A stretch of DNA of 64,000 bases, taken from IMG/VR virus record IMGVR_UViG_3300020154_000003, positions 62,001 to 126,000 of that record; one strand, given 5' to 3'. The notes under the pieces are model-generated. The model made no database searches, was not told where the DNA came from, and saw nothing but the letters and a program-made list of their open reading frames with translations. The number at the start of each line of letters is the position of its first letter. Position 1 is the first letter of the stretch. Position numbers and translations under genes: made by a program. Of this stretch, positions 28,303 through 63,677 are shown one piece after another.

Positions 28303-28317
28303 TTCGTTATTGTGATG

Positions 28318-28356
28318 CAAATGTAATAGTAAATACGTAGATTCCAAAAAAAGGTT
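28318..28356 (-). promoter_or_regulatory. composite promoter of tRNA operon 1
   Basis: AAC-N16-CGTA, overlapping GTATTTA, then TACATTTG. Confidence 0.75.
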
Positions 28357-31266: not shown

Positions 31267-31315
31267 CATTTTATAATTTTTTCCGTATTTACTAACAAAC
31301 CAGATAATACATTCG
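31265..31315 (+). promoter_or_regulatory. composite promoter of tRNA operon 2
   Basis: AAC-N16-CGTA overlapping GTATTTA; degenerate TACATTCG. Confidence 0.7.
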
Positions 31316-31318
31316 AAA

Positions 31319-31435
31319 ATGAAAACTTTAATATCATCAGTAACTTTAGAAGCATTAGCATTGAACGCTATGGCGGTTGCCTTAGTGGAGGATGATATGC
31401 GTCATGGGTTTTCTGATATTATAGTTGGATTCTAA
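31319..31435 (+). CDS. leader peptide 2 (Val/Leu-UUR/Glu/Ala/Met/Asp sensor) MKTLISSVTLEALALNAMAVALVEDDMRHGFSDIIVGF
   Basis: 38 aa ORF before terminator; 18 of 20 codons (8-27) are V/L/E/A/M/D; all Leu codons are TTA/TTG. Confidence 0.85.
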   Translation: MKTLISSVTLEALALNAMAVALVEDDMRHGFSDIIVGF

Positions 31436-31458
31436 AAAAATAACAACATCAAATCAGG

Positions 31459-31484
31459 AAACCCGACCGAAAGTCGGGTTTTTT
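31459..31484 (+). terminator. attenuator terminator, tRNA operon 2
   Basis: AAACCCGAC-CGAAA-GTCGGGTTTTTT. Confidence 0.9.
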
Positions 31485-31511
31485 GTTTTTAGGAGTTCTT
31501 TGAAAATAAAA

Positions 31512-31705
31512 AGTAATCGATGCGTGGTGGAATTGGTATACACTGCCTTTGAAACGCGATAAAACACATGAGCAACCAGTAAGCTGTTGTCATGATGCGC
31601 TGAGTAGTTGGACTGTCCGATGAAATCTAATCGGGCTGCGGGGGATAAACCGTGGGTTGTTTTCAACATCCAATACAGGTTCGAGTCCTGTCGCTGAAGA
31701 TTGCT
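31512..31705 (+). ncRNA. large tRNA-like RNA
   Basis: Leu-type D arm GTGGAATTGGTATACAC, T arm ACAGG-TTCGAGT-CCTGT, closing AGTAATC/GATTGCT, ~130 nt insert. Confidence 0.55.
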
Positions 31706-31895: not shown

Positions 31896-31967
31896 TGTAT
31901 GTTCGTCTAGGGGTCTAGGACACTCCCTTCATCGGGGGAAACATTGGTTCGAATCCAATACATACTC
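31896..31967 (+). tRNA. atypical tRNA (Glu-type D arm, irregular anticodon loop TTCATC[G])
   Basis: Acceptor GTATGT/ACATAC, T arm ATTGG-TTCGAAT-CCAAT. Confidence 0.55.
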
Positions 31968-39804: not shown

Positions 39805-39843
39805 AACTTTTTTTTGGAAATTACGTATTTATCTTTACCTTTG
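39805..39843 (+). promoter_or_regulatory. composite promoter of tRNA operon 3
   Basis: AAC-N16-CGTA, GTATTTAT, TACCTTTG. Confidence 0.75.
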
Positions 39844-39879
39844 TGCAACAATTGCGAAGGCAAAAAAGAAAAAGAAATC

Positions 39880-39948
39880 ATGAGAACTTCAAAGACATAT
39901 AAAACTTATAAGTATCAGCCACAAGCTGAGTCGAGTTTTATTGTCTAA
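39880..39948 (+). CDS. leader peptide 3 (Lys/Tyr sensor) MRTSKTYKTYKYQPQAESSFIV
   Basis: 22 aa ORF; AAG ACA TAT AAA ACT TAT AAG TAT run. Confidence 0.85.
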   Translation: MRTSKTYKTYKYQPQAESSFIV

Positions 39949-39971
39949 AAATATCTTGCAAGGAAGACACC

Positions 39972-40004
39972 AAAAACCCGATTCAGAAATGAGTCGGGTT
40001 TTTT
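39972..40004 (+). terminator. attenuator terminator, tRNA operon 3
   Basis: AAAAACCCGATTCA-GAAA-TGAGTCGGGTTTTTT. Confidence 0.92.
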
Positions 40005-48487: not shown

Positions 48488-48802
48488 ATGAATTATTTAG
48501 AAAAAGAAATAGCCCTTTTCAAAAGGAGAAAACAACTTTTGAACCAGCCAATATTGAAAGTTGTTGGGGAAGGTTGTCAAGCAATTAGCGAATTTCAATG
48601 GATTGGAAAAGTAATCGGTTTCGAAGAAGATAAGGAAAAGGGTTGGACTGTGGCAGTCATCAAAATTTTGAAACATAATCGTTCATACGGTGATGCCAGA
48701 GACGCTAAGGAGGATGAAATTTATACTTATCCAATAGCGAACAAGTATTACATGATCAATGACATTCAAAACGTTGATGGTGTATGGATACTTTACACAT
48801 AG
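48488..48802 (+). CDS. hypothetical protein
   Basis: MNYLEKEIALF... Confidence 0.55.
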   Translation: MNYLEKEIALFKRRKQLLNQPILKVVGEGCQAISEFQWIGKVIGFEEDKEKGWTVAVIKILKHNRSYGDARDAKEDEIYTYPIANKYYMINDIQNVDGVWILYT

Positions 48803-48812
48803 AAATGCGGAT

Positions 48813-49874
48813 ATGTTACTAACTAGAGATCAATTCAGGGAAGGTGTCTTTAAAAGAGATAAATACAGATGTGTCGTGTGCTTTAATCCTGCAGTTGATG
48901 CTCACCATATCATTGAAAGAAAATTATGGGATGACGGTGGATACTATTTGGATAACGGGGTTTCTCTTTGTGAACGTTGTCACATGAAAGCAGAACAAAC
49001 GATTATTTCTTGCGATGAGTTAAGAAATTCTGTTGGTATCACAACTAATCATTTACCAGCAATATTGTTTGATCGATTGATGGATGACAACAGAATCACG
49101 AATATAGGAAAGGTAAGTTTCGATAAATGGGGTAACCTAATACTGGCAGACGGTAGCCGTAGACCGGGGCCAATGTTTAATACGGAACAGGTTCAAAAAA
49201 TCATAAAGCAAGCCAATTTATTACATCTGTTTGTGGAAGATAAATATGTAAAATATCCAAGGACGTATCACTTACCATACAGCGAAAAAGCCTCTGCAGA
49301 CGATAAAAGATTATCCAGTACTGAGCAATTCGCAGGTAAGGAAGTGGTAGCAACCATCAAACTTGATGGGGAAAACACCACTTTGTATCAAGATCATATC
49401 CATGCAAGGTCTTTGGATTCAGCACATCATCCCTCTCGCGATTGGGTTAAAGGTTTGTGGGGAAGTTTCAAACATGAAATACCTGACGGTTGGAGAATTT
49501 GTGGTGAGAATGTTTACGCACTGCACACAATACCCTACAACAACTTAGAAACATACTTCTACGTTTTTTCCATATGGGATAATACGAATACCTGCCTTTC
49601 GTGGGATGAAACGGTTGCATACTGTGAAATGCTCGGACTAAAAACAGTACCCGTAATTTATCGTGGTGATTTTGATCAAGCGAAAATACAAGCTGCTTTT
49701 CCTGCAACACACAATGGTGATCCCACTGAAGGATATGTGGTTAGACTGACCGAACGTTTTCATTACGATGAGTTTGAAAATTCGTTAGCTAAATATGTGT
49801 CAAAGTCCTTCATTATCGAAGGCGCACAACATTGGATGCAGAATGCAATAATACCAAACAAGCTTTCTTCTTAA
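48813..49874 (+). CDS. HNH domain fused to ATP-dependent RNA ligase
   Basis: RDKYRCVVC..DAHHI..NGVSLCERCH; KYPRTYHL, KLDGEN, ICGEN, EGYVVR, AKYV. Confidence 0.88.
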   Translation: MLLTRDQFREGVFKRDKYRCVVCFNPAVDAHHIIERKLWDDGGYYLDNGVSLCERCHMKAEQTIISCDELRNSVGITTNHLPAILFDRLMDDNRITNIGKVSFDKWGNLILADGSRRPGPMFNTEQVQKIIKQANLLHLFVEDKYVKYPRTYHLPYSEKASADDKRLSSTEQFAGKEVVATIKLDGENTTLYQDHIHARSLDSAHHPSRDWVKGLWGSFKHEIPDGWRICGENVYALHTIPYNNLETYFYVFSIWDNTNTCLSWDETVAYCEMLGLKTVPVIYRGDFDQAKIQAAFPATHNGDPTEGYVVRLTERFHYDEFENSLAKYVSKSFIIEGAQHWMQNAIIPNKLSS

Positions 49875-50050: not shown

Positions 50051-50644
50051 ATGTTTAAAACATCTCGCTTCTTAGTCATTTTGTCTATATTTTTTTTATG
50101 TTCCTTCGTGTCGAATAAAGAAGTAATGGTGATTGGCGACAGCATAACAGCTAATGGCACTTTTGTGGATTACCTTAAAGTTGAAACTGGTATGAACTTT
50201 AAATCGTATGGGTTCACTGGTGAAGGAACTTCACATATATTGAAGAGGTTGAAAAACATCAATGTCACAAAATACAATTACATCATTATTGAAGCGGGTA
50301 TAAACAACATCGACAATGCTTCTCAAGTAATGAGTGATATGAAGGAAATGTTTCAATACGCAAAATCTGAAAACCCTGACATCAAGGTTATCGTGTTGAC
50401 AATCGTACCATTCAAAGGTTATCCAACATGGACACCGAAGAAACAAGAAAATCTTCTGAAAGTAAATTCATGGCTTTTAACAAAACCAGAAAATGTCGAT
50501 ATTGTTGTTGATATTTATGATGTCATGTCCGTTAATGGATTTCAACCACACTCGACTGATGGTCTTCATCCTTCCAGAAAGGGACATAGATTAATGGCTG
50601 ATTTGATAAAACCTCATTTACAAGATGGCATACGGAGTTATTGA
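50051..50644 (+). CDS. SGNH/GDSL hydrolase, secreted
   Basis: GDSIT, GINN, DGLHP. Confidence 0.88.
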   Translation: MFKTSRFLVILSIFFLCSFVSNKEVMVIGDSITANGTFVDYLKVETGMNFKSYGFTGEGTSHILKRLKNINVTKYNYIIIEAGINNIDNASQVMSDMKEMFQYAKSENPDIKVIVLTIVPFKGYPTWTPKKQENLLKVNSWLLTKPENVDIVVDIYDVMSVNGFQPHSTDGLHPSRKGHRLMADLIKPHLQDGIRSY

Positions 50645-51053
50645 ATACGATGATGATGGCAATCCCATTTGTGAGATTTGTAAAAAATCTTTCAAAAGAG
50701 TATTGAGTCATGTTCGCCAAAAGCATGACATGAATGAACGAGAGTATAAGCTTAAGTTCGGTTTTGATCTCACCAAGGGAATATGCAGTGAAGAAAGTTC
50801 GGAAGCATCAAGAATTATGGTGTACCAGAATTATGATCGCTGTATATCTAAGAATTTAATAAGAAAGGGTGTTAAAACCAGATACAAAAAAGGTGATCCC
50901 GGACGAACCAAAGATATGGTGCAAGAACAAACCAGAATTGCATTAATTGAACGGTTAAAAGAACCGAAGATGGTCAAAGCAATGAAAGCGTCTGGTAAGA
51001 AAGTAGGGAAAACAGGTTTAGGAAATTTAGCCCGATGGGGTAAAAAAAGTTAG
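50625..51053 (+). CDS. C2H2 Zn-finger protein
   Basis: CEICKKSF...HVRQKH..EYK. Confidence 0.65.
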   Translation: MAYGVIEYDDDGNPICEICKKSFKRVLSHVRQKHDMNEREYKLKFGFDLTKGICSEESSEASRIMVYQNYDRCISKNLIRKGVKTRYKKGDPGRTKDMVQEQTRIALIERLKEPKMVKAMKASGKKVGKTGLGNLARWGKKS

Positions 51054-51095: not shown

Positions 51096-51371
51096 ATGAA
51101 TTTGATCGGTGAGTTGGGGACTGCATTTACTAAATTAAGACTGTATTGGAAATATTTCGGTCTGCCTGCGGAAGATAAAAAGTTGTTAGTTGAGATTGAA
51201 ATGTTGGCAATGGAGCCTGATTCACCTCAAAAATGGGGACTTCTTGCTGAACGGTACTGGAAGCTAATTGAGTGTCATGATGGTTTAAGCAGGCACTCAA
51301 TTGAACATTACGCGAACCAATACACTGCTTGTAGAACTAAGTTTCTGAAGAAAAGTCTGCCTCTTAATTAA
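51096..51371 (+). CDS. hypothetical protein
   Basis: 91 aa; TATATTTG at 51084. Confidence 0.55.
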   Translation: MNLIGELGTAFTKLRLYWKYFGLPAEDKKLLVEIEMLAMEPDSPQKWGLLAERYWKLIECHDGLSRHSIEHYANQYTACRTKFLKKSLPLN

Positions 51372-51400
51372 TTTTTATAAAAAAATACATAAAAAATCGC

Positions 51401-51439
51401 AACTTTTAATTGCAAGTCTCGTATTTATGGTTACATTTG
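51401..51439 (+). promoter_or_regulatory. composite promoter of tRNA operon 4
   Basis: AAC-N16-CGTA, GTATTTAT, TACATTTG. Confidence 0.75.
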
Positions 51440-51454
51440 CAACGCATTAAAAAA

Positions 51455-51586
51455 ATGGAAAAACTAACGTCAAATATTAATCGATCAAACTGGTGTGGAA
51501 GTAATTCTATATCAGGGAATATTCTTGGCTCTACATTTAGAGGCACGAACGGGTTAATGTTTGATACAGATGGTGGAACACTGTAA
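51455..51586 (+). CDS. leader peptide 4 MEKLTSNINRSNWCGSNSISGNILGSTFRGTNGLMFDTDGGTL
   Basis: 43 aa; codons 4-33 use only L,T,S,N,I,R,W,C,G,F. Confidence 0.85.
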   Translation: MEKLTSNINRSNWCGSNSISGNILGSTFRGTNGLMFDTDGGTL

Positions 51587-51610
51587 ATAGAAGAAAAAAT
51601 ATCAAACACT

Positions 51611-51638
51611 AACCCGACCCAAAAAGTCGGGTTTTTTT
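51611..51638 (+). terminator. attenuator terminator, tRNA operon 4
   Basis: AACCCGAC-CCAAAAA-GTCGGGTTTTTTT. Confidence 0.9.
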
Positions 51639-51646
51639 ATGTCTAT

Positions 51647-51740
51647 ACATCGGCATTCATTGGTGAGATAAGCAGTCTCCAAAACTGTGCGAAAGGAGTA
51701 ATTACTGAGTAGCTTGTGGGTTCGAATCCCACCCTTTGTG
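51647..51740 (+). tRNA. atypical tRNA-Trp(CCA), long variable arm, weak acceptor
   Basis: GCAGT-CTCCAAA-ACTGT; GTGGG-TTCGAAT-CCCAC. Confidence 0.6.
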
Positions 51741-51754
51741 CGAAAATAGTAAAT

Positions 51755-51826
51755 GGATAGGTAGCTTAATGGTGAAGCTTTCGGCTGTTAACCGAATGAG
51801 TGTGGGTTCGAGTCCCACCCTGTCCT
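51755..51826 (+). tRNA. tRNA-Asn(GTT)
   Basis: TTCGG-CTGTTAA-CCGAA. Confidence 0.9.
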
Positions 51827-51835
51827 CAATAATAA

Positions 51836-51908
51836 GGGGTTCAAGCTAATCTGGTGAAAGCGTCTGCCTGAAGAGCAGAAGAGTTCGGTTCGAAACCGAA
51901 GTTCCCCA
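51836..51908 (+). tRNA. tRNA-Phe(GAA)
   Basis: TCTGC-CTGAAGA-GCAGA. Confidence 0.85.
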
Positions 51909-52059
51909 CCGTGATCTAAAGTATTTCGAGACCTAAATCGGGTACTGGTGATGACAACGATCATTGACATGCTGGAAAAAAATTTGATAAAATTAGGTTA
52001 ATTTTGGAAAAAGTTAACTATGTTTACAATTGTTGAACAAGTTAACTTTTTCTATATTT

Positions 52060-52143
52060 GCCGATGTCGCATAGTGGTTGATTGCACCTGACTTGTAATC
52101 AGGAAGATAATATCTCGCGGGGGTTCGAATCCCTCCATCGGCT
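52060..52143 (+). tRNA. tRNA-Thr(TGT) with long variable arm
   Basis: CCTGA-CTTGTAA-TCAGG. Confidence 0.85.
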
Positions 52144-52159
52144 CAAGAAATTTTAAAAC

Positions 52160-52504
52160 ATGATTATTGATCAATACTTAATAATATCTGAAGGAAAAAA
52201 GAAGTGGAATCCCAATGTTAAATTGGTGAAAACATTGAAAGGCAACATGCCTTCGAATGCTATCGCTCTTAAACTTAACATTGACATACCCGACAGTATT
52301 TTCAAGCGTCCTCAGCTTCAAGCTTCAATTAAGATTAATGAAGAAGACATTGCCAAACCAGTAATTAATGGACAGGTACTGGATAACATTAAAGAAGTGT
52401 TTAAGCAGCAGCTTGGAGTTGAAGTAACCTTACAACACATTCAACCTGATTTAGAACTTGCTAATTATAATATTGGTGTTAAGAATTTCCTAAAGGAAGA
52501 ATAA
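52160..52504 (+). CDS. hypothetical protein
   Basis: 114 aa ORF. Confidence 0.6.
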   Translation: MIIDQYLIISEGKKKWNPNVKLVKTLKGNMPSNAIALKLNIDIPDSIFKRPQLQASIKINEEDIAKPVINGQVLDNIKEVFKQQLGVEVTLQHIQPDLELANYNIGVKNFLKEE

Positions 52505-52510
52505 TAATTT

Positions 52511-52583
52511 GCCTTCGTAGTTCAACGGAAGAACATCACTCTTCTAAAGTGTATGGTTGGGGGTTCGAATCCCTCCGAAGGTA
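52511..52583 (+). tRNA. tRNA-Arg(TCT)
   Basis: CACT-CTTCTAA-AGTG. Confidence 0.88.
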
Positions 52584-52597
52584 CGATTTAATGAAAT

Positions 52598-52669
52598 GCC
52601 CTTGTAGTTCAATGGATAGAATAGTTGCCTTCTAAGCAATTGATATTGGTTCGATTCCAATCAGGGGTA
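52598..52669 (+). tRNA. tRNA-Arg(TCT)
   Basis: GTTGC-CTTCTAA-GCAAT. Confidence 0.92.
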
Positions 52670-52793
52670 CTAAATGGAAAAAAGAAGAGTAAGACCTTCT
52701 GCTTTAATGTGGTGGAGAATACAATTAATGATCGCAATATTAATGTATCTTTTTTCACATGAGATTGCTGAAGTTATAGTTATATTAGTACAA

Positions 52794-52866
52794 GCCCTTA
52801 TAGATTAACTGGAAAATCACTCCGCTACGAACGGAGAGACTGTAGGTTCGACTCCTACTAGGGGTA
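52794..52866 (+). tRNA. tRNA-Arg(ACG)
   Basis: CTCCG-CTACGAA-CGGAG. Confidence 0.92.
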
Positions 52867-52870
52867 CAAT

Positions 52871-53083
52871 ATGAAAAACAAAAGGGTTATTAAAATAAAG
52901 TTTTATGGGTTTGCCCAATTACTTACTGTCCTATTTATAGGATTGAAATTAACAGATCATATTGACTGGTCATGGTTATGGGTTCTATCCCCGTTATGGT
53001 TGCCTGCAGTAGTTGTGATTTCAATATTATTAATTATGTTTCTATTCATGTTAATTGTTGCAGCAGCTTCAAGTAGTAGATAA
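52871..53083 (+). CDS. small transmembrane protein
   Basis: LFIGLKLT..IDWSWLWVLSPLW. Confidence 0.7.
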   Translation: MKNKRVIKIKFYGFAQLLTVLFIGLKLTDHIDWSWLWVLSPLWLPAVVVISILLIMFLFMLIVAAASSSR

Positions 53084-53089
53084 ATAAAT

Positions 53090-53263
53090 TGTAGAGTGGC
53101 GAAATTGGCAGACGTTGCCCATCGGTCTCATGGGAGGGGAGCAAGAAATAAAGATGAAACAATGTTGTTTGTTGGTTGGAAATCAATAAACGGGTGGCGA
53201 AAGAAATTTTAACATTAAAGTAATCCTAATCTCCCCGTGTAGGTTCGACCCCTACCTCTACAG
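53090..53263 (+). ncRNA. tRNA-like RNA with ~95-nt variable-arm insertion
   Basis: TGTAGAG/CTCTACA acceptor, D arm, CCCAT-CGGTCTC-ATGGG, insert closed by GGGGAG/CTCCCC, T arm. Confidence 0.65.
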
Positions 53264-53277
53264 CAAAAAATACAAGT

Positions 53278-53511
53278 ATGGAAGGGCCAACGAAATTATT
53301 TTTCCCTGCAAGGGAAGAACTTCATTGTTCAGGATGTAAATATTATGATTATCATTTAGTGAAAAGTGGTCATCATCCTGTTTATGCGAAGCATTGTACT
53401 CACCCAACAGTTGAGCAATCAATGTGGTGTTTCGAAGGAAATTTACCTAAAGATGGTATCACTCCTGAATGGTGTCCATACTTGAAGAAAAATGAAAGAT
53501 CAACATATTAG
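53278..53511 (+). CDS. Cys-rich small protein
   Basis: CSGC...C...TPEWCP. Confidence 0.6.
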   Translation: MEGPTKLFFPAREELHCSGCKYYDYHLVKSGHHPVYAKHCTHPTVEQSMWCFEGNLPKDGITPEWCPYLKKNERSTY

Positions 53512-53713
53512 TAGAGCACGAGCACATTGCTCGTTATGTGATATAAATTTCGTTGCGTCTGCAACACATGAAATTTCGGTTGAAGCTGAATTGAAATCAA
53601 TTGATCAATTAAAAGAACAATTAGAAGAACATTTTATTACTTCAATGCATCAAAAAAATGTTGAAGCATTTAAGCAATACAATGAAGAAATAGTCGGGTA
53701 TATCAACGGTTAG
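53492..53713 (+). CDS. C2H2 Zn-finger small protein
   Basis: CSLC...H....H; 3' end overlaps tRNA-Ile. Confidence 0.55.
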   Translation: MKDQHISRARAHCSLCDINFVASATHEISVEAELKSIDQLKEQLEEHFITSMHQKNVEAFKQYNEEIVGYING

Positions 53714-53764
53714 ATTGTCATCCTGATAAGATGAAGGTAGTGGGTTCGACTCCCACCCTGACTA
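53692..53764 (+). tRNA. tRNA-Ile(GAT)
   Basis: TCATC-CTGATAA-GATGA. Confidence 0.9.
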
Positions 53765-53850
53765 CTGAGATATGTTATGAATTAATAACAGTGTTTTGAA
53801 ATTCTGTAGAACGTGTACAGAAACACGAGAGCAATCTCGTCTCAAAGAAT

Positions 53851-53922
53851 GGGCGGTTCATATAAGGGTAAATATGCGAAGCTGATAACTTCGACACAGC
53901 AGTTCGACTCTGCTACTGCCTA
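53851..53922 (+). tRNA. tRNA-Ile(GAT)
   Basis: CGAAG-CTGATAA-CTTCG. Confidence 0.88.
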
Positions 53923-54025
53923 CTTGCATCGAAGGATGGTGTAGTTTCATCTTAGGCCAATGTAACCTGAGCCTTAATCACTGAACGTGGGAGCAGAAAG
54001 AGAGATGATTAGCATATCGATATAT

Positions 54026-54100
54026 TGGCCCTTAGCTTAGTCCGGTGAAAGCGACACACTCATAATGTGAAGATCGGGGGTTCGAATCCCTCAGGGCCAA
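54026..54100 (+). tRNA. tRNA(CAT), probably Ile2 (lysidine type)
   Basis: CACA-CTCATAA-TGTG; GGCCC acceptor; follows two Ile tRNAs. Confidence 0.8.
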
Positions 54101-54109
54101 CTTAAAATT

Positions 54110-54388
54110 ATGGAAGAAAGAATATACACAATTGATCGAGTTCGTTTCGAAGGGAAATGGGTCGAGTACTGGTTCGTTGAAAAACCGCTTGAAGGAAGAA
54201 TGAGTTTTGATGCTTGCTCTAAAGGCTACATGCTTTGGAATGCAATAGATAAAGCGGGTATTTATGATGAAGTCGTTTCAAACGGACTTAAAGGAAGAAA
54301 AATGAAATGGGTTAAGAATGAAAATTCATATGTTTTCGAACCAAAAGAATTTGTGATGGACGTTTCTTGTTTCTGTAATCAAGATTAA
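54110..54388 (+). CDS. hypothetical protein
   Basis: 92 aa ORF. Confidence 0.55.
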   Translation: MEERIYTIDRVRFEGKWVEYWFVEKPLEGRMSFDACSKGYMLWNAIDKAGIYDEVVSNGLKGRKMKWVKNENSYVFEPKEFVMDVSCFCNQD

Positions 54389-54392
54389 AAAT

Positions 54393-54482
54393 AGAGAGTT
54401 ACCCAAGCTGGTGAAGGGGCCGATTTGCTAAATCGGTAGGTCATGTTAAAGTGGCGCGAGGGTTCGAACCCCTCACTCTCTG
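54393..54482 (+). tRNA. tRNA-Ser(GCT)
   Basis: CCGAT-TTGCTAA-ATCGG, long arm, G73. Confidence 0.93.
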
Positions 54483-54546
54483 CGAGAATGAATACATGCC
54501 AAGTTGAAAGGGAACTCACAGTGGGAGCACTGCCCCTTGGCTCCAT

Positions 54547-54617
54547 GCAGATGTGGTATAGTGGTATTACGTTAGCTTGCCAAGCTAAGGACGAGGGTTC
54601 GATTCCCTTCATCTGCT
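54547..54617 (+). tRNA. tRNA-Gly(GCC)
   Basis: TTAGC-TTGCCAA-GCTAA, U73. Confidence 0.93.
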
Positions 54618-54620
54618 CAT

Positions 54621-54977
54621 ATGTTTTACGAAAATTATCCAATTGAAGAAATTCCTAATGATATTAGGGAAATCTATGAACGTGATGTTAAACCATACAT
54701 CGGTCAATTAGTATTAAATGGCCATGAGGTTGTAAGGTTAGCAGGAATGACATTAGCTGGCGATGGAGAATGGTGTTATCGATACATGATTTTTCCTTCA
54801 TTTTATTATTGGAATCAAAATCGTAAACAAGAAATTTGTGAACCATCACTTTTGATTATGCATCCAATCCCGCTTAAAGGAGTTTTACCGGATGAGACTT
54901 ATGATGAGTTAGAAAGAGTATGGAAAATGAATGAAGAACGTTGTCCTTATTCTAAAGATTGGTTTAAGGAATTTTAA
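54621..54977 (+). CDS. hypothetical protein
   Basis: 118 aa ORF. Confidence 0.6.
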   Translation: MFYENYPIEEIPNDIREIYERDVKPYIGQLVLNGHEVVRLAGMTLAGDGEWCYRYMIFPSFYYWNQNRKQEICEPSLLIMHPIPLKGVLPDETYDELERVWKMNEERCPYSKDWFKEF

Positions 54978-54980
54978 AAT

Positions 54981-55052
54981 GCGAGTGTGGTGCTAGTGGT
55001 AACACAGTGGACTTCCAATTCACAGTCGCGGGTTCGATTCCCGCTACTCGCT
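54981..55052 (+). tRNA. tRNA-Gly(TCC)
   Basis: GTGGA-CTTCCAA-TTCAC. Confidence 0.92.
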
Positions 55053-55057
55053 CAATA

Positions 55058-55144
55058 GGAGAATTAGCATAATTGGTAATGCAGCACTCTCGAAAAGTGC
55101 CATGACTGTAAAAGGTCTTGTAGGTTCGAGTCCTACATTCTCCG
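55058..55144 (+). tRNA. tRNA-Ser(CGA)
   Basis: GCACT-CTCGAAA-AGTGC. Confidence 0.92.
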
Positions 55145-55161
55145 CAAAAATCAAATTTTAC

Positions 55162-55665
55162 ATGAAAGTAATCAATATATTCGGTGGCCCCGGAACGGGT
55201 AAATCAGTAACTGCAGCAAAGTTGTTTGCAGAATTAAAGATCAAAAAGTATAATTGTGAACTAATCACAGAATACGCAAAAGAACTAGTTTACGATGAAT
55301 CTTTTAAGTTGATGGAAAATCAGATTTGGATTTTTGCCAATCAGCACCACCGAATGCATCGCCTCAGGGACAAAGTGGACTACTTAATTACGGATTCACC
55401 GTTATTTAACTCTATTGTTTATTCGGGAAAAGGTGAAGAACACAAAACTTTTCATAGTTTTATCATGACAGAGTTTAACAAATACAACAATTTAAATGTA
55501 TATTTGGAACGTGAAACCGAATACCAAACTGTTGGTAGGTATCAGGATGAGGAAGGTGCGAAACAGGTTGATTTAGAGGTTCTTAGACTGTTTAAATACT
55601 TTGATGTTCCGTATGTGAAGATCGGTTTACATAATGTAACAAGTAATATAATGAATCTTTTATGA
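55162..55665 (+). CDS. P-loop nucleotide kinase/AAA (NadR-like)
   Basis: GGPGTGKS, EYAKE, ITDSP. Confidence 0.8.
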   Translation: MKVINIFGGPGTGKSVTAAKLFAELKIKKYNCELITEYAKELVYDESFKLMENQIWIFANQHHRMHRLRDKVDYLITDSPLFNSIVYSGKGEEHKTFHSFIMTEFNKYNNLNVYLERETEYQTVGRYQDEEGAKQVDLEVLRLFKYFDVPYVKIGLHNVTSNIMNLL

Positions 55666-55892
55666 TAACGGAGGAACAACTTGACTCACTCCTTGAATTC
55701 GGGAAAGAAGCTGATGGAAGTTATTGCGATAGATGGCAGTTTTCCATCAAAAAGAGATTCGGGAAATGGAATTTTTACCTGTTTTGTGAGGTAGATGGTA
55801 AATTAACACATATTAAAGTTTTAAAAGACTTTGAAGATTTGAAAAATGTGTATAAAGCCATCACCGATCAAGAATTAGAATATAAAAAATAG
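55662..55892 (+). CDS. hypothetical protein
   Basis: 76 aa ORF. Confidence 0.55.
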   Translation: MITEEQLDSLLEFGKEADGSYCDRWQFSIKKRFGKWNFYLFCEVDGKLTHIKVLKDFEDLKNVYKAITDQELEYKK

Positions 55893-55977
55893 AGAGTTGC
55901 CAGAGTGGTTTATCGGGGCGGTCTTGAAAACCGTTGAACTGTAACAGGTTCCGGGGGTTCGAATCCCTCACTCTCTG
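55891..55977 (+). tRNA. tRNA-Ser(TGA)
   Basis: GCGGT-CTTGAAA-ACCGT. Confidence 0.93.
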
Positions 55978-55978
55978 C

Positions 55979-56308
55979 GTGATATACGTAGTTAACAAAT
56001 ACAAGCACACCCCAACAGAATTTGATGTCAAAATATCAAGACCATCACCTTTGGGTAATCCCTTTACTTCGAAAGATGTTAAATCTACTAGAGCAAAATA
56101 TCAGTCGAGTTCAAGGGAAGAGTCAATCAAAAACTTTGAAAGTTACATAGTTGCTAAGATTGCACAACGCGACAAAGCAATATGTGATGAACTTAACAAG
56201 ATATATTTGATGGCCAAAAGGGGTGATGTGTATTTGGTGTGTTTTTGTAAACCGCAGGACTGTCACGGTGACATCATAAAGAAAATTGTTGAAAGTAAAT
56301 TAGCATGA
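55979..56308 (+). CDS. DUF4326-like protein
   Basis: RPSPLGNPF...L.CFCKP..CHGD; GTG start. Confidence 0.75.
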   Translation: MIYVVNKYKHTPTEFDVKISRPSPLGNPFTSKDVKSTRAKYQSSSREESIKNFESYIVAKIAQRDKAICDELNKIYLMAKRGDVYLVCFCKPQDCHGDIIKKIVESKLA

Positions 56309-56643
56309 CCAGAACATTAAAATTTGAAAAAGATACCTTATCACAGTGGTTTGCTGTGATTCCTGAATGGTCTGGTAGCAGAGATGATTTACAAATGGTA
56401 ATGGGTGCTGATACATTACTTGAGATCATTGCCCAAGGAGAAAATAACGTGGAGGTTTTATTTAGTACAGAACCTTTTGAAGGAAGCAATGTCCTCAATT
56501 GGAGTGAAGATGATCTAGTAATTGGCGGTGGTTATTACGAACTACCTACTTACATGAACATTGAATATAATCTAAACATATGGCTTTGTGATGTCACCAA
56601 ATTTGTGTTTGGAGATATGCCAAGACATATTTACTTTAAATAA
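56305..56643 (+). CDS. conserved hypothetical protein (DUF6717-like)
   Basis: LQMVMGADTLL...WLCDVTKFVFG..P..IYF. Confidence 0.6.
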   Translation: MTRTLKFEKDTLSQWFAVIPEWSGSRDDLQMVMGADTLLEIIAQGENNVEVLFSTEPFEGSNVLNWSEDDLVIGGGYYELPTYMNIEYNLNIWLCDVTKFVFGDMPRHIYFK

Positions 56644-57148
56644 CATGGCAAGCGAAATTTTAGCGGTTCCTGAAGAATATCTGGAGGAAGTAATTAAGGT
56701 CATCCGCACAGGGTTGAAACACACAAAAGTTTCAAAAAGCGTAAAATCCAATCTAACTAAATGGTGTAATGAAGAAGAGCAGTATTTATTGGAAATGGAT
56801 GATGACGAATGAAACCATACGGAAGAAGAGAAAAAGGCGTTCAATTCCACTCAAAAACCGATCATAACATCAGGTTCAAAAATCGAAAGATCGGAAATTG
56901 GTGGGAAGATATAGGTTCTTCTAGTAAGAAAACGGAACGTCAAAAAGCTAAAAAATATTGTAATGAAGAAATGGTGGTATACAATAAGACCGAACCAAAG
57001 TGAGACTGTTCGTAAATTAATTGCCTTAGGTAAGGGCAGAGATATTATGAACGCAATTCAAATAGAAATGAGATCAGGGAAAGGTCATGGCACTTACAAT
57101 GGGATTAGGGTTGAGCGGGTTGGAAGAATTATTATTGATTAAATAAAT

Positions 57149-57220
57149 ACGGGTATCGTACAGTGGCTAGTATAGCGATCTCCAAAATCGTTGACGTGGG
57201 TTCGAATCCTACTACCCGTG
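57149..57220 (+). tRNA. tRNA-Trp(CCA)
   Basis: GCGAT-CTCCAAA-ATCGT. Confidence 0.92.
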
Positions 57221-57236
57221 CAAGTTTTAATTTATT

Positions 57237-57479
57237 ATGGCGAAGAAAGTTAAAAAAGTAGAAGATATATTAGGTCAACCAGACATCATAGAATCGTTTA
57301 GTGTTTTTTATTATCAAGATCAAAAATCAAAAGGTTACTCAATATTCTCTGACGAGTTTCCATTCTTTGGGTCTCAAGGCGAAACAAAAGAATTGGCATT
57401 TGAAAACTTCATAAAAGATTTAGGTGCGATTCTCGCCATACAAAGACGAGACAAAGAAAAAAGAAAGAAGAAAAAATAA
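57237..57479 (+). CDS. HicB-like domain protein
   Basis: GYSIFSDEFP..GSQGETKELAFEN. Confidence 0.5.
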   Translation: MAKKVKKVEDILGQPDIIESFSVFYYQDQKSKGYSIFSDEFPFFGSQGETKELAFENFIKDLGAILAIQRRDKEKRKKKK

Positions 57480-57486
57480 AATATAT

Positions 57487-57576
57487 TCTTGGGTTGCTAT
57501 AGTGGCCGAATAGTCCAGACTGTTAATCTGGTGAACGCAAGTTCCATCGCAGGTTCGACTCCTGCCCCAAGAGCCA
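57487..57576 (+). tRNA. tRNA-Asn(GTT) with long variable arm
   Basis: CCAGA-CTGTTAA-TCTGG, GAAC-GCAA-GTTC arm, encoded CCA. Confidence 0.85.
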
Positions 57577-57593
57577 CACATTAAATAATTGAA

Positions 57594-58520
57594 ATGAACA
57601 AGGAATTACTAGACTTCGTAAGGGTTTTATCTGAAAACGATAAAAAGAATCTATGTCAAAAAGCATTGAAAACCTCTGAAGAAGTTGGTGAATTAGCGAA
57701 AGCAGTATTACCATTTGAAAATGCTGCAGGTACGCTGCATAGATTTTCTGACCGAAGAAAAATTCTTGAAAATGTTGCTGACGTTATTTTGAGTGCAATA
57801 TCAATAGCATATGATATGAAGTTCACGGATGAGGCGATTGAAGATATGATGCTTGAGAAGTCTAAAAAGTGGCAGGGAATACAGGCGAAGGAAGACAAAA
57901 CAAAATTTCCTTTACCATATGAAATTCATGTCACGGTTCAACGACCTGAGGATATTGAGGAATTTAAGAAAGTGTGCGGTGTGATTGGGGTTAAACCGAT
58001 CATCATTGAATTGGAAAAGAATCAGGAAGTGGTAATGCAGGATGTTATGACATCATCCGTTCATTTCGGGGATAATAGGTCTGCTTACGAAGAGGTTGAA
58101 AGAATCTCAAAAAGATTGGCATTACATTCGTTCAATGTTTTGAGAAGTAAAATTGAGACTGTGCCTTGGCATCCCGCAGCACCGACAAGGAATGGTGAAA
58201 GTAAAATGCCAATGGACTGTTATTTTGAGTCGCATTTAAGAATTGTAACTGACAAAACTAAATACGATAATTTGAGGGCGATTGCGGAATATCATGAAGC
58301 ACATTTATCAAGAAACTACTTTAAGAAATTAAGCGAAACGGAATACATCATCATGATGACGTTAAGATCGTATGATGATAATGCAGAAAATTTCAAAAGT
58401 AGAGTGGAAGCATTAAAGAACGAATTGCGTGATTTGAATTTTAATGTTGATAAGGTTGAAATTGAATTTGCGGTTTACGATACAAAAACATCTCACGACA
58501 TTGCGTGGATAGGGAAATAA
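57594..58520 (+). CDS. MazG-like NTP pyrophosphatase fused to an uncharacterised domain
   Basis: KTSEEVGELAKA...ENVADV. Confidence 0.75.
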   Translation: MNKELLDFVRVLSENDKKNLCQKALKTSEEVGELAKAVLPFENAAGTLHRFSDRRKILENVADVILSAISIAYDMKFTDEAIEDMMLEKSKKWQGIQAKEDKTKFPLPYEIHVTVQRPEDIEEFKKVCGVIGVKPIIIELEKNQEVVMQDVMTSSVHFGDNRSAYEEVERISKRLALHSFNVLRSKIETVPWHPAAPTRNGESKMPMDCYFESHLRIVTDKTKYDNLRAIAEYHEAHLSRNYFKKLSETEYIIMMTLRSYDDNAENFKSRVEALKNELRDLNFNVDKVEIEFAVYDTKTSHDIAWIGK

Positions 58521-58523
58521 AAA

Positions 58524-58874
58524 ATGGACTACAATACGTTTCTTGAAGAATACAAGAAGAATGAAAAAGATGGTGTCTATTGGATAATGACAACACTTAA
58601 GGATATGGGGAATAATAAGGAATATGATGATTTCCAAACTATCCTTGATAATGCGGAACCAGAAATTTTTAAAGACGGATCAGTAACAATTGCCTTAGTT
58701 GCATGGTGGTTTGGAGATCATCTTGATCGCTCGAATTACGTAAAGAAGGCCATCCAATATTACGATGAATTAAAGGGCGATGGCTACGGTGAAAAATTGT
58801 TTGGTCGATTTGGTAATGGTTCATGGAAACCTTCATTCGGATTTGAAAGACGAATGTTTGATATTAAAGAATAG
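58524..58874 (+). CDS. hypothetical protein
   Basis: 116 aa ORF. Confidence 0.55.
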   Translation: MDYNTFLEEYKKNEKDGVYWIMTTLKDMGNNKEYDDFQTILDNAEPEIFKDGSVTIALVAWWFGDHLDRSNYVKKAIQYYDELKGDGYGEKLFGRFGNGSWKPSFGFERRMFDIKE

Positions 58875-58961
58875 AGAGATGACCGAGTGGCTGATGGTGC
58901 CTGCTTGGAAAGCAGGTTTACGTGTAAAAGCGTAACAAGGGTTCGAATCCCTTTCTCTCTG
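58873..58961 (+). tRNA. tRNA-Ser(GGA)
   Basis: CCTGC-TTGGAAA-GCAGG. Confidence 0.93.
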
Positions 58962-58967
58962 CAACAT

Positions 58968-59040
58968 GCGAAGGTAGTTTAACTGGATAAAGCAGCCCCC
59001 TCCGAAGGGGTAGATGTAGGTTCGACTCCTGCCCTTCGCA
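58968..59040 (+). tRNA. tRNA-Arg(CCG)
   Basis: GCCCC-CTCCGAA-GGGGT. Confidence 0.9.
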
Positions 59041-59042
59041 CA

Positions 59043-59187
59043 AAGTAAGCGAAAGGTTGTGGGTTGGATTCCCATCATCCGCATCGAAATAGAGATAAAC
59101 CGAATCTGAAAATTCGGTCGTCAGCTATCAGGTAGTCAGGAAGTACAACTGTAGGATGTAACTCAATGTCAGAGTAGTCGCTTATTT
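59043..59187 (+). ncRNA. candidate structured RNA
   Basis: Closed by AAGTAAGCGA/TCGCTTATTT; internal ACCGAAT/ATTCGGT hairpin. Confidence 0.4.
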
Positions 59188-59191
59188 ATTT

Positions 59192-59266
59192 GCCTTAGTG
59201 GTGTCTCAACGGCTAACACACGCCCTTGGTAAGGGCGAGATTCGAGTTCGATTCTCGACTAAGGCT
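59192..59266 (+). tRNA. tRNA-Thr(GGT)
   Basis: CGCCC-TTGGTAA-GGGCG. Confidence 0.9.
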
Positions 59267-59431
59267 CACAATGAAAAGATTGAAAAAGACACAATATTGT
59301 ATTTATTGTAAGGAACAAAAAATACACCCCGCATTTAAAGAGGAACTTTTGTGTGGTACTTGTGCTAGTGATTGCTTTGAAGACTATCGAGATAGAATTT
59401 CAACGTATCATAAAAATAAAATTTCTATAAT

Positions 59432-59514
59432 GCCCTCATGATGTAACGGTAGCCATGCTGGTCTAAGAAGCCAGTGCTGTAAAAGGCGTGTCAGTTCGAA
59501 TCTGACTGAGGGTA
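59432..59514 (+). tRNA. tRNA-Leu(AAG)
   Basis: CTGGT-CTAAGAA-GCCAG, long arm, A73. Confidence 0.88.
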
Positions 59515-59691
59515 CAAAAACTTAAAATTTAATATGGCAGTTTATAGACCAGTATGTATTTGTCCTGATTGTGGAAAACCGTTTGAAGAAGTACACAAAC
59601 AGTATGATCCTTCTGTAGTGTTTGTTGGAGATACTTTTATGTATTATGATTTCGATGGACATGTCTGCGAAAGGAAGGAAGAAGAAGTTGA

Positions 59692-59901
59692 ATGAAAGAA
59701 TATGAACCATACCATGTTTGGATGTATAGAAAAGCACCCGAACTTCCTGTTGATTACATATTGAGCAATAAGGAGTGTATGGATTATTTGATGAAGGATG
59801 ATAATTTATTTGATTGGTTGGAAGTTTTAGTTGCTCTTAAAGAGCATAACATGATGGTTGAAATTGCGGATAAGAACCTCGATGAAATCCTATCTACTTA
59901 A
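59692..59901 (+). CDS. hypothetical protein
   Basis: 69 aa ORF. Confidence 0.5.
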   Translation: MKEYEPYHVWMYRKAPELPVDYILSNKECMDYLMKDDNLFDWLEVLVALKEHNMMVEIADKNLDEILST

Positions 59902-59905
59902 GAAA

Positions 59906-60148
59906 ATGGAAGACTTGTTTTTTGATAGTTATTACGATGAACTAATCTCTGAAAGAGAGAATGAGATAACTAGGAAAGCATTATTAAGTAATAGAATTTT
60001 AAAAGGATCAATGTATATGGATGTAGGATATGTTTATGCACCATACATACCTATAACTACAACACCATTGACCGTTAACCCAAATATTGTGGGTCGATAT
60101 AAAAAGAAGTGCGTTATGGGAAAATATTATGGAAGACTCGTTCTTTGA
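59906..60148 (+). CDS. small protein carrying a copy of the major-capsid C-terminal motif
   Basis: KGSMYMDVGYVYAPYIP...RYKKK...YYG vs capsid KGSSILESGYIYAPYVP...RYAKK...YFG. Confidence 0.7.
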   Translation: MEDLFFDSYYDELISERENEITRKALLSNRILKGSMYMDVGYVYAPYIPITTTPLTVNPNIVGRYKKKCVMGKYYGRLVL

Positions 60149-60344
60149 TGAGTATGAAGAATTAATACGTAAAAGAGAAAAACAGGTAACTGATCACGCC
60201 TTTGCAATGAACAAGTTAGATCGTTCAATGGGCGACATACAACAAAAACTAGTATTATTAGGTACATCAATAAATAATTTTGGTGAGGTACTTACTACAC
60301 ACAATCTGAAATTAGAAGAAGTTCTAAAAAAGATGAAAAAATAA
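60129..60344 (+). CDS. hypothetical protein, N-terminus paralogous to 59906 ORF
   Basis: MEDSFFDEYEELIRKREKQVT vs MEDLFFDSYYDELISERENEIT. Confidence 0.6.
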   Translation: MEDSFFDEYEELIRKREKQVTDHAFAMNKLDRSMGDIQQKLVLLGTSINNFGEVLTTHNLKLEEVLKKMKK

Positions 60345-60347
60345 TTA

Positions 60348-60430
60348 GCCCCCGTGGTGGAACGGCAGACACAGCAGACTTAGAATCTGCCGCCTTCAGT
60401 GGCATGAGAGTTCGAATCTCTCCGGGGGCA
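60348..60430 (+). tRNA. tRNA-Leu(TAG)
   Basis: GCAGA-CTTAGAA-TCTGC. Confidence 0.93.
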
Positions 60431-60557
60431 CTATGAAAGAATTTAAATTTAAAATCAGATTTTATTACTGGTACTGGTTTACATTCTCTAACTGGAAATA
60501 TTTCTTGAGATTCATACTCCTATTTCCAATCATGTACTGGTTAACACAATTTATATT

Positions 60558-60779
60558 ATGAAAAATTGGGGAAATATTTTTAATATTGAATCTAAAGATG
60601 GAACATGGGAAATCACTCATCATGAGGAAGATAATATCCTGTCATTTCAATTTTGGAATTATGAGAATCAAGGAACAGAGGGAGAGAAACTAAAAAATAA
60701 GAAATATATGTTTCTTACCTATGAACAAGCTAACTCATTGATCGATTTTATTGAGGAAGTAAAAAAGAGGGTAGAATAA
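60558..60779 (+). CDS. hypothetical protein
   Basis: 73 aa ORF. Confidence 0.5.
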   Translation: MKNWGNIFNIESKDGTWEITHHEEDNILSFQFWNYENQGTEGEKLKNKKYMFLTYEQANSLIDFIEEVKKRVE

Positions 60780-60786
60780 AATAAAT

Positions 60787-60861
60787 GCACGTATGGCTGA
60801 GTGGTCAAAAGCATCTGCCTGCAAAGCAAAAAAATCGTTGGTTCGAATCCAACTACGTGCT
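60787..60861 (+). tRNA. tRNA-Cys(GCA)
   Basis: Loop CTGCAAA, U73. Confidence 0.85.
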
Positions 60862-60862
60862 C

Positions 60863-61539: not shown

Positions 61540-61612
61540 GTCTTAGTAGCACAATTGGCGGTGCAACGATCTCTAAAATCGGAGGATGCGGGTTCGATCC
61601 CCGCCTAAGGCA
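61540..61612 (+). tRNA. amber suppressor tRNA (CTA)
   Basis: GTCTTAG/CTAAGGC acceptor; CGAT-CTCTAAA-ATCG. Confidence 0.85.
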
Positions 61613-61613
61613 C

Positions 61614-63022: not shown

Positions 63023-63403
63023 ATGAAAAAAGAACTGTAGATTTCCAATCCTAGCGATCTTAAACTGGTAACCATTACCAGACAAGACCTACCAATGGGC
63101 GCAATCATTGCCCAAACAGTACATTCAACAGCATCATTTGCCATCCAGTACCCTGACAAATTTCGTCATTGGGAACAAACATCAAACTACGTAGCGTGTC
63201 TAGCTGCAAAGGATGAGCAAGAACTACTCAAGTATTACGACCGATTAATAAAGGCAGGAGCCGATGTGGTATTATTCCGTGAACCCGACATGGATAACCA
63301 AGCAACATCCCTATGCTTTTACGGCACTCCTGAGTTTCGGAAAATTACAAGCAGTTTACCATTAATGTTCAAGCAGAAGAAGGAGGTGGCTATGGCAGCA
63401 TAA
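63023..63403 (+). CDS. peptidyl-tRNA hydrolase Pth2-like, with in-frame TAG at codon 6
   Basis: MKKEL*ISNPSDLKLVTITRQDLPMGAIIAQTVHS...FREPDMDNQATSL. Confidence 0.8.
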
Positions 63404-63585: not shown

Positions 63586-63658
63586 GAGAGTATGGCTCAG
63601 TGGTTAGAGCAAGGACTTCTAAACTCCTAGGTCGTGGGTTCGAATCCCACTACTCTCT
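63586..63658 (+). tRNA. amber suppressor tRNA (CTA)
   Basis: GAGAGTA/TACTCTC acceptor; AGGAC-TTCTAAA-CTCCT (C31:C39 mismatch). Confidence 0.75.
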
Positions 63659-63677
63659 CTCAATAAAATAAAAAGTT

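Follow-up and report, generated by a model that had tools for sequence, protein, structure and literature searches.

Leader, terminator and tRNA block at the locus

We analysed a stretch of 64 kb (the window) from the 366-kb viral contig IMGVR_UViG_3300020154_000003, which comes from a soil metagenome. The window contains 52 tRNA genes, and ahead of one block of them (block 4) lies a short open reading frame (ORF) that is followed by a hairpin with a run of T. A preliminary description of the sequence had interpreted this arrangement as an attenuator (attenuator 4) whose codons match the tRNAs encoded downstream. The following features are found at the locus:

51400–51441, plus strand: promoter-like module, with CGTATTTA at 51420–51427 and then TACATTTG at 51432–51439
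51455–51586, plus strand: leader ORF, ATG at 51455, 43 codons, TAA at 51584–51586
51464–51553, plus strand: sensor stretch, codons 4–33, every codon readable by tRNAs of the downstream block
51490–51549, plus strand: two hairpins within the sensor stretch (51490–51515 and 51522–51549), −22.2 kcal/mol, z −3.45
51550–51566, plus strand: predicted antiterminator 5′ arm (segment 2), codons 32–38, ending 17 nt before the stop codon
51600–51616, plus strand: predicted antiterminator 3′ arm (segment 3), whose last 6 bases are the first 6 of the terminator 5′ arm
51611–51638, plus strand: intrinsic terminator, 8-bp G+C-rich stem, 7-nt loop and 7 T, −12.0 kcal/mol, z −2.7
51755–60862, plus strand: block 4, proposed to be controlled, with 22 tRNA genes interleaved with small same-strand ORFs

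The sensor codons encode exclusively L, T, S, N, I, R, W, C, G and F, and each of the ten amino acids is present (S6, N6, G5, T3, I3, L2, R2, W1, C1, F1). The tRNAs of block 4 are Asn, Phe, Thr, Arg, Ile, CAT, Ser, Gly, Trp, Leu-AAG/TAG and Cys; that is, ARAGORN detects between 51755 and 60862 tRNAs for exactly the ten sensor amino acids, plus one tRNA with a CAT anticodon at 54026. The translation of the ORF and the list of tRNAs thus bear out what had been claimed, namely that codons 4–33 are limited to ten downstream tRNA identities and that W, C and F occur once each. With standard wobble, 30 of 30 sensor codons can be decoded by anticodons of the block. The proposed match for Leu and Arg also holds at the level of codons: for Leu, the sensor uses CTA and CTT, and the block encodes Leu-TAG and Leu-AAG and no Leu tRNA that reads UUR, while the Arg codons are CGA and AGA, with Arg-ACG and Arg-TCT encoded downstream. 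ATA is found among the Ile codons.

To judge this match, we determined how common the ten amino acids are: in the 42 long ORFs of the window, they account for 0.50 of all residues. A run of 30 consecutive codons from the set then has a probability of P = 9.5e-10 per position, and about 1e-4 such runs are expected across all frames of the window. At the amino-acid level the run even extends to 31, because codon 34 (TTA) also encodes Leu; this is the longest run in the six frames of the 64 kb, and the runner-up has a length of 24. The presence of all ten amino acids in the sensor is weak when taken alone (P = 0.12). Furthermore, a cognate sensor codon exists for 17 of the 20 anticodon species of block 4, compared to 10.0 ± 1.9 for random strings, none of which reached 17 in 5000 trials.

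The peptide encoded by leader 4 matches no Pfam or PHROG family; it can be aligned with leaders of other phages that are rich in T, C, I, S, F, G, N and R (the T/C/I/S class, described below). The flank 5′ of the ORF is A-rich and a Shine–Dalgarno sequence is absent. Most leaders of any class, in the window and in relatives, start with M-K-T/N/K-L (AAA and ACN codons after the ATG), which may aid efficient initiation in a host that does not use Shine–Dalgarno pairing. Many of the codons in leaders that lie outside the respective set are found because these first residues are counted.

The pairing between the end of the ORF and the flank of the terminator is exact, as had been described: 51550–51566 pairs with 51600–51616. 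Folded as a hairpin, segments 2 and 3 reach −22.1 kcal/mol (z −5.3), and none of 200 shuffled sequences is as stable; as a duplex they reach −21.6 kcal/mol compared to −9.2 ± 2.5 for shuffled sequences. The fold of the whole leader (−52.2 kcal/mol, z −5.1) contains the antiterminator in both the minimum free energy (MFE) and the centroid structure. The two hairpins within the sensor stretch may be pause or spacing structures. In Rfam, only tRNA matches are found at gathering thresholds. With a permissive E-value, the top match of the leader is Trp_leader, which reaches 22 bits compared to a threshold of 41 and covers the terminator only; a T-box match is not found, permissive thresholds included. 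The locus thus has the parts of an attenuator: a short ORF before the first gene, cognate codons, and two mutually exclusive structures, namely an intrinsic terminator and an antiterminator whose 5′ arm a translating ribosome could mask.

Three further elements of this design are present in the window:

28152–28337, minus strand: sister attenuator 1, ORF 28302–28204 with the run QHPQHQPQ, terminator 28181–28152
31284–31490, plus strand: sister attenuator 2, ORF 31319–31435 rich in V, L, E, A, M and D, terminator 31459–31484
39813–40004, plus strand: sister attenuator 3, ORF 39880–39948 with KTYKTYKY, terminator 39974–40004

Attenuator 1 lies ahead of Pro, His, Pro, Gln and Gln tRNAs (binomial p 9e-5; pairing z −6.6), attenuator 2 ahead of Asp, Leu-CAA/TAA, Ala, Glu, Met and Val tRNAs (p 7e-4) and attenuator 3 ahead of three Lys and three Tyr tRNAs (p 8e-3); for leader 4 and its own block, the binomial p is 2e-7. 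In leader 2, 18 of the 20 codons of one stretch belong to the set of its block, including five Leu codons that are all TTA or TTG, and 8 of 8 anticodons of the block are sensed. When each of the four leaders is compared to each of the four blocks, enrichment is found on the diagonal only; the off-diagonal cells are at or below expectation and not significant. Jointly, the four blocks span all 20 amino acids, with Leu divided by codon family.

Leaders and tRNA blocks in other phages

We scanned viral contigs in IMG/VR and metagenome contigs from JGI/ENA with DNA patterns and found the order of promoter, leader, terminator and tRNAs in more than 100 contigs, in four classes. The class with Lys/Tyr leaders was reached via a terminator that is common to leader 3 of the window and a first match. 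With a pattern that covers only the leader of this class, 38 viral and 113 metagenomic stretches were detected. These contain 82 distinct leader peptides, each with a terminator and a tRNA cluster behind it, and 300 of the 317 tRNAs in these clusters are Lys or Tyr. Since tRNAs were absent from the search pattern, this is an independent test of the association.

A second pattern contained only the promoter module that several non-Lys/Tyr leaders have in common. Among viral contigs, it yielded 37 sites. At 35 of these, a short ORF, a terminator and a tRNA block come next, and two classes can be distinguished among them. Leaders of the first are rich in D, E, V, L, A and M, contain one W and are found with Asp/Glu/Val/Leu/Ala/Trp/Met blocks. 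Leaders of the second are rich in T, C, I, S, F, G, N and R and lie ahead of matching blocks; several of them contain runs of 28–30 codons that encode only those eight amino acids. In addition, Q/H/P leaders lie ahead of Pro/His/Gln clusters in four other phages (loci L211, L213, L218 and L219).

For leaders that involve multiple amino acids and have at least six tRNAs in view, we tabulated whether an amino acid occurs in the sensor zone and whether its tRNA occurs in the block. The association is strong (93/80/7/100, odds ratio 16.6, p 1.7e-17), with a 'zone yes, block no' cell that is inflated because many blocks are cut by the end of the locus. When blocks are permuted among leaders, the observed fraction of codons within the set is never matched (p < 2e-4). 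At the level of anticodons, a cognate sensor codon exists for 104 of 118 species in the multi-amino-acid leaders, compared to 62.8 for random sequences (maximum 79 in 5000).

The assignment of tRNAs to blocks differs between phages, and the leader codons differ with it. In the window, the Trp and Leu-AAG/TAG tRNAs belong to block 4; leader 4 contains W, CTA and CTT, and leader 2 contains no W and only TTA and TTG as Leu codons. Seven other phages instead have the Trp, Leu-CUN and Leu-UUR tRNAs in the Asp/Glu/Val/Leu/Ala block, and the leaders of these Asp/Glu/Val blocks contain one W and a mixture of CUN and UUR codons. For instance, in one leader (2840–2932 of locus L062) five distinct Leu codons face five Leu isoacceptors. 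Across all informative distinct leaders, the presence of a W codon agrees with the presence of a Trp tRNA (8/0/0/10, Fisher p 2.3e-5), although the rows are related by descent and the p-value thus overstates their independence. The informative event is the joint move of the Trp and Leu-CUN tRNAs and of their codons in the lineage of the window.

The pairing of the two arms recurs as well. In all four elements of the window, the 3′ segment of the ORF pairs with the 5′ arm of the terminator and its flank (z −3.2 to −6.6), and in 14 of 16 representative elements the duplex of segments 2 and 3 is better than in shuffled sequences. For 33 distinct non-Lys/Tyr elements, whose arms were absent from every search pattern, the pairs of segments 2 and 3 from the same element have −17.85 kcal/mol compared to −14.05 ± 0.46 for mismatched pairs (P < 1e-4). 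This indicates that the 3′ arm of the ORF and the arm of the terminator co-evolve across the family. The conserved residues on the C-terminal side of the leader peptides are those encoded by the pairing arm. In the Lys/Tyr class, for example, I-G-I-G-N is encoded by GGAATCGGG, which is complementary to CCCGATTCC of the terminator.

The T/C/I/S class also informs the reading of the CAT tRNA at 54026, which is probably a lysidine-type Ile2 tRNA. ATA is present in every leader of this class. Among the blocks of the class with at least nine tRNAs (window included), a CAT or TAT tRNA is present alongside Ile-GAT in 7 of 8, and the lone block without it (L147) ends at the end of the locus. Together, these codons and tRNAs support the Ile2 reading, short of proof. 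Thus, of the earlier claim that the Ile codons include ATA for an Ile2 tRNA, the ATA codon is plainly present, whereas the identity of the tRNA is deduced.

Relatives from soil are found in contigs of four 'metatranscriptomic' runs. In these relatives, 51420–51797 is 98–99% identical, compared to about 90% for the neighbouring ORFs, and the two variants listed in the leader region are at 51591 and 51593, past the stop codon in the loop that leads up to segment 3. The window segment 51157–51419, which comprises most of the ORF at 51096–51371 and a spacer, is swapped in them for about 290 unrelated letters. This replacement stops exactly at CGTATTTA (51420), where near-identity resumes.

Searches of the region and of the leader of a relative against 50,697 phage records with megablast and blastn returned generic tRNA similarity only, and no match of the leader to a cultured phage was found. 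In 185,579 representative bacterial and archaeal genomes, the Lys/Tyr leader yielded three chance matches in coding DNA and one phage contig, and there is thus no sign of the element in cellular genomes. The phage contig, JBAZIW010000001.1 (L089), carries a Lys/Tyr leader and tRNA blocks and is assigned to a GTDB representative metagenome-assembled genome of 'Candidatus Paceibacterota'; it looks like a large phage genome that was binned as a bacterium.

Proposed mechanism and alternative explanations

In classical ribosome-mediated attenuation, a race between ribosome and polymerase decides if the terminator or the antiterminator forms (PMC1183508). We regard it as likely that the element described here is such a leader-peptide attenuator, and that it couples the transcription of a phage tRNA block to the speed of decoding. 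Transcription would begin a few bases before the start codon at 51455, with a ribosome translating the 43-codon leader behind the moving polymerase. If codons 4 to about 28 are read fast, the ribosome would arrive at segment 2 or at the stop codon before segment 3 can pair; segment 3 would then pair with segment 4, the terminator at 51611–51638 would form and the tRNA genes would stay silent. If the ribosome lags at a codon whose charged tRNA is scarce, segment 2 would be free to pair with segment 3. The resulting antiterminator helix (−22 kcal/mol) is predicted to be far more stable than the terminator (−12 kcal/mol), whose formation it would prevent, and the polymerase would enter the tRNA block. 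The tRNAs produced would read the sensor codons, and since the products themselves read the sensor, this would be a direct negative feedback loop with supply on demand. Possible triggers are a codon mismatch between phage and host, loss of host tRNAs, a tRNA-cleaving defence or starvation. The sequences establish the anatomy, the match between codons and tRNAs, the alternative structures, their conservation and the co-variation; that the promoter is active and the leader translated, in which direction the switch responds, to what trigger and how far downstream is inferred.

The preliminary description had proposed a ten-input OR gate over about 9 kb. A leader-peptide attenuator that mirrors the tRNA identities is retained here, whereas a strict Boolean OR gate is less likely than a kinetic race in which decoding delays are summed, since the ten amino acids are scattered over 30 codons. 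More broadly, we lean towards the view that the large phages of one widespread group, probably phages of Bacteroidota, sort their tRNA genes into three or four amino-acid regulons, whose leaders jointly monitor the decoding of the 20 amino acids. Each leader would sample roughly one codon per isoacceptor, so that only those phage tRNAs would be switched on whose codons are read slowly, for instance after host tRNAs have been depleted or cleaved by anticodon nucleases.

Several points weigh against the attenuator as proposed. Block 4 contains Arg-CCG, Ser-CGA, Thr-GGT and a CTA suppressor tRNA that have no codon in the sensor, and with single W, C and F codons the signal for these amino acids may be weak. 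A ribosome covers roughly 12–15 nt downstream of its A site; stalls at codons 29–33 should thus favour termination and not read-through, because the footprint of the ribosome would mask segment 2. Where the amino acid itself is short, extra tRNA is no help. The naked leader RNA adopts the antiterminator in the MFE and centroid folds, and termination therefore requires a ribosome close behind the polymerase, and a host in which the two are coupled that tightly. Among the relatives, 17 of the 317 tRNAs behind Lys/Tyr leaders have other identities, the sensor zones of L024, L043 and L049 carry E, D, A, Y and V while such tRNAs are absent from the visible part of the block, and the block of L085 has a Gln tRNA while its leader has no Q. 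Substitutions stay within the amino-acid set at a fraction of 0.60 compared to 0.52 expected, which is a weak test in homologous leaders. Lastly, block 4 contains a near-perfect hairpin of 50 nt (52005–52054; −20 kcal/mol, z −6.2) and six matches to the −7 box TAnnTTTG.

These last two features concern the reach of the proposed control. The hairpin is preceded by an A-tract and followed by a U-rich tail (to 52060). It lies just upstream of tRNA-Thr and might act within the block as a terminator or as a site for RNase III-type processing. A sigma-70-like site at 51964–51993 also speaks against a long unit. In favour of it, all tRNAs and nearly all ORFs at 51640–60862 are on the plus strand, with minus-strand genes from 60863; a standard scan detected no canonical plus-strand terminator between 51640 and 62683; and the promoter module is found only at the heads of blocks. 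Furthermore, leader 4 has codons for tRNAs that are 5–9 kb away (Trp at 57149, Leu at 59432 and 60348, Cys at 60787). Sensing these tRNAs would be pointless if they were beyond the reach of the leader, which favours the long unit. That a single switch controls the whole block of about 9 kb as one transcript is nevertheless unproven because of the hairpin (52005–52060) and the six −7-box matches.

An internal promoter at 52053 had been suggested to bypass the switch in part. For tRNA-Thr this is unlikely: the motif TATATTTG is located at 52053–52060 and its last G is nucleotide +1 of the tRNA. The site looks like the flank that is conserved ahead of the first tRNA in relatives. There, a conserved box, GTTCTTTGACATGTTGGAAA or the shorter GTTCTTTACAT, is found between the terminator and the first tRNA (e.g. 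L210, L213, L217, L218 and L224), 0–17 nt before the tRNA in 17 of the 19 relatives ascertained by their promoter. In the window, it is found at about 51957–51975 and at 33398. With its end 0–17 nt from the tRNA, the box has too little room to serve as the promoter of this tRNA, and it may instead signal processing or pausing.

For the leader itself, we infer that the module at 51400–51441 acts as the promoter. Housekeeping promoters of the Bacteroidota type have the consensus TTTG/TTG about 19–21 nt upstream of a −7 box TAnnTTTG. TACATTTG at 51432–51439 fits this −7 box, with ATTG 19 nt upstream, and GCAACTTTT, which is located upstream within the module, is related to GTAACATTTT of the relatives. 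A 22-nt motif of the module has two copies in the window (0.08 expected), each at a leader. CGTATTTA is located upstream of all four leaders, which account for four of its seven copies in the window. We considered the copy at 11878 as a sign of a fifth element and rejected it, as it sits within a coding region. Full matches to TTTG...TAnnTTTG are found at leaders 1 and 3 of the window and at most Lys/Tyr leaders. In the window as a whole, this motif is not enriched (67 matches compared to 81 expected). A scan of the window for sigma-70-type promoters gave 60 sites compared to 61.6 expected, which makes it uninformative.

Among other explanations, the one that survives best is a real attenuator that reports general translation capacity, such as ribosome availability, host shut-off or infection timing, with the codon composition as a by-product. 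We consider this unlikely. It would fit that the naked RNA defaults to the antiterminator, so that any failure of translation would lead to read-through, that the leader is long with 43 codons and might serve as a timer, and that several relatives tolerate codons outside the set. However, a by-product would not track the identities of tRNAs across four classes, nor would it shift W and Leu-CUN codons along with their tRNAs.

It is less probable still that the ORF encodes a small functional peptide, with the hairpin merely as its terminator and with tRNA genes that have their own promoters. Within a class, the length of the ORF and in part its sequence are kept, and both the conserved box that relatives have behind the terminator and the promoter-like site at 51964–51993 might be read as such promoters. 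Yet the peptide matches no protein family, its amino-acid set follows the tRNAs although its sequence varies freely, and its conserved 3′ residues are encoded by an RNA arm that pairs with the terminator and co-evolves with it; the box, for its part, is too near to the tRNA.

We find it very improbable that the RNA senses tRNAs directly, like a T-box, through pairing of codons and anticodons without translation. A leader packed with codons for the downstream tRNAs and a terminator/antiterminator pair would be expected in this case too, but a search at permissive thresholds detected neither a T-box nor another Rfam family that matches, each of the more than 100 copies has its codons in a single frame from ATG to stop, and thirty specifier positions are without precedent among T-boxes. 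Lastly, an accidental ORF beside the terminator of the upstream gene, which a set that covers half of the residues and an A+T-rich window with many short ORFs might suggest, is refuted by the sequence statistics (P about 1e-9 per position, about 1e-4 expected in the window) and would leave three more copies of the design in the window and more than 100 on other contigs to be explained.

Known systems and further features of the tRNA island

Leader-peptide attenuators are known from enterobacteria and include trpL, hisL, leuL and pheL as well as the multivalent thrL (Thr and Ile) and ilvL/ivbL (Ile, Leu and Val). The phage element resembles these attenuators of amino-acid operons, and most of all those of thr and ilv, in that a codon-rich ORF lies close to the promoter and is followed by a terminator, with the 5′ arm of the antiterminator at the end of the ORF. 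It differs from them in several respects. It is found in phages and would control tRNAs instead of enzymes, and the product would feed back on the sensor directly. It involves up to ten amino acids and here about 17 isoacceptors, compared to one to three amino acids, and the 30 codons are scattered and not arranged as a tandem run. Furthermore, an untranslated trp leader terminates, whereas leader 4 without translation favours read-through according to its predicted fold. Among the operon leaders in Rfam (Trp_leader, His_leader, Leu_leader and Thr_leader), the phage leader belongs to none.

Attenuation of the translation machinery by a leader peptide, and not of biosynthesis, has a parallel in the pheM leader of pheST, which attenuates an aminoacyl-tRNA synthetase. 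In contrast to the phage element, pheM involves one amino acid, a protein product and a cellular gene. T-boxes likewise couple the state of a specific tRNA to the choice between terminator and antiterminator upstream of translation-related genes; however, a T-box binds one uncharged tRNA via a single specifier codon and a conserved T-box sequence, whereas here codons would be translated. The tRNA island itself resembles the clusters of T4, T5 and megaphages, where tens of tRNA genes occur with small ORFs and tRNA-repair genes. For such clusters in large phages, we know of no description of leader peptides or of regulons sorted by amino acid.

According to a preprint, mycobacterial polycysteine leaderless short ORFs are Cys-responsive attenuators (bioRxiv 10.1101/834739). 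Like the phage leaders, these are short ORFs near the transcript start that contain codons of the sensed amino acid and control an operon (bioRxiv 10.1101/834739). They differ in sensing one amino acid and in controlling cellular cysteine-related genes and not tRNA genes. In the full-text literature that we searched, which has most subscription journals outside its coverage, no leader peptides or attenuators ahead of tRNA genes are described.

To our knowledge, leader-peptide attenuation of tRNA genes has not been reported before. What is new is the tRNA-gene target, the sorting of phage islands into amino-acid regulons, the degree of multiplexing and the sampling of one codon per isoacceptor. 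Why phages carry tRNA genes is a long-standing question, and candidate roles are compensation for codon usage, replacement of lost host tRNAs and escape from tRNA-cleaving defences. If the proposed mechanism is correct, the supply of phage tRNAs would be regulated by demand, codon by codon, and a leader would tell which codons the phage expects to become limiting, which would offer an experimental handle. With ten amino acids and about 17 isoacceptors, the element would be by far the most multiplexed attenuator. Its design rules (one codon per isoacceptor, an antiterminator arm inside the ORF) would be portable and might allow the construction of synthetic sensors of tRNA availability, and the sorting of tRNA islands by amino acid would be a new clue for the annotation of large phage genomes.

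Several minor features surround the attenuators and their blocks. The first item behind terminator 4 is a sub-threshold tRNA-like sequence:

51646–51741, plus strand: Trp-CCA-like with a long extra arm, detected at a relaxed ARAGORN threshold only

Similarly, a Glu-UUC-like sub-threshold sequence (31628–31698), again found at the relaxed setting only, lies directly behind attenuator 2. In the stretches that follow attenuators 2 and 4, ARAGORN with introns allowed and in the tmRNA mode made no calls other than weak tRNA-like ones, and these at a relaxed threshold. Two tRNA-like genes, at 27259–27333 (minus strand) and 31896–31967 (plus strand), have a two-base anticodon in an irregular loop according to ARAGORN, and akin calls labelled '???' are also found in the blocks of relatives.

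At the edges of block 4, we found an HNH-RNA ligase fusion (48759–49871) and a PTH2-like peptidyl-tRNA hydrolase (63095–63400), which would fit a theme of tRNA maintenance in the island. The RNA ligase, used as a search query, detected only two distant and unrelated phage loci, both without leaders. A gene for a Ros/MucR-like zinc-finger protein (50625–51050) lies just upstream of attenuator 4. Lastly, two tRNAs with a CTA anticodon (61540–61613 and 63586–63659) are amber-suppressor-like and labelled Pyl by ARAGORN, which hints that TAG is recoded in a part of the genome of the phage. The four leader ORFs of the window all terminate with TAA.

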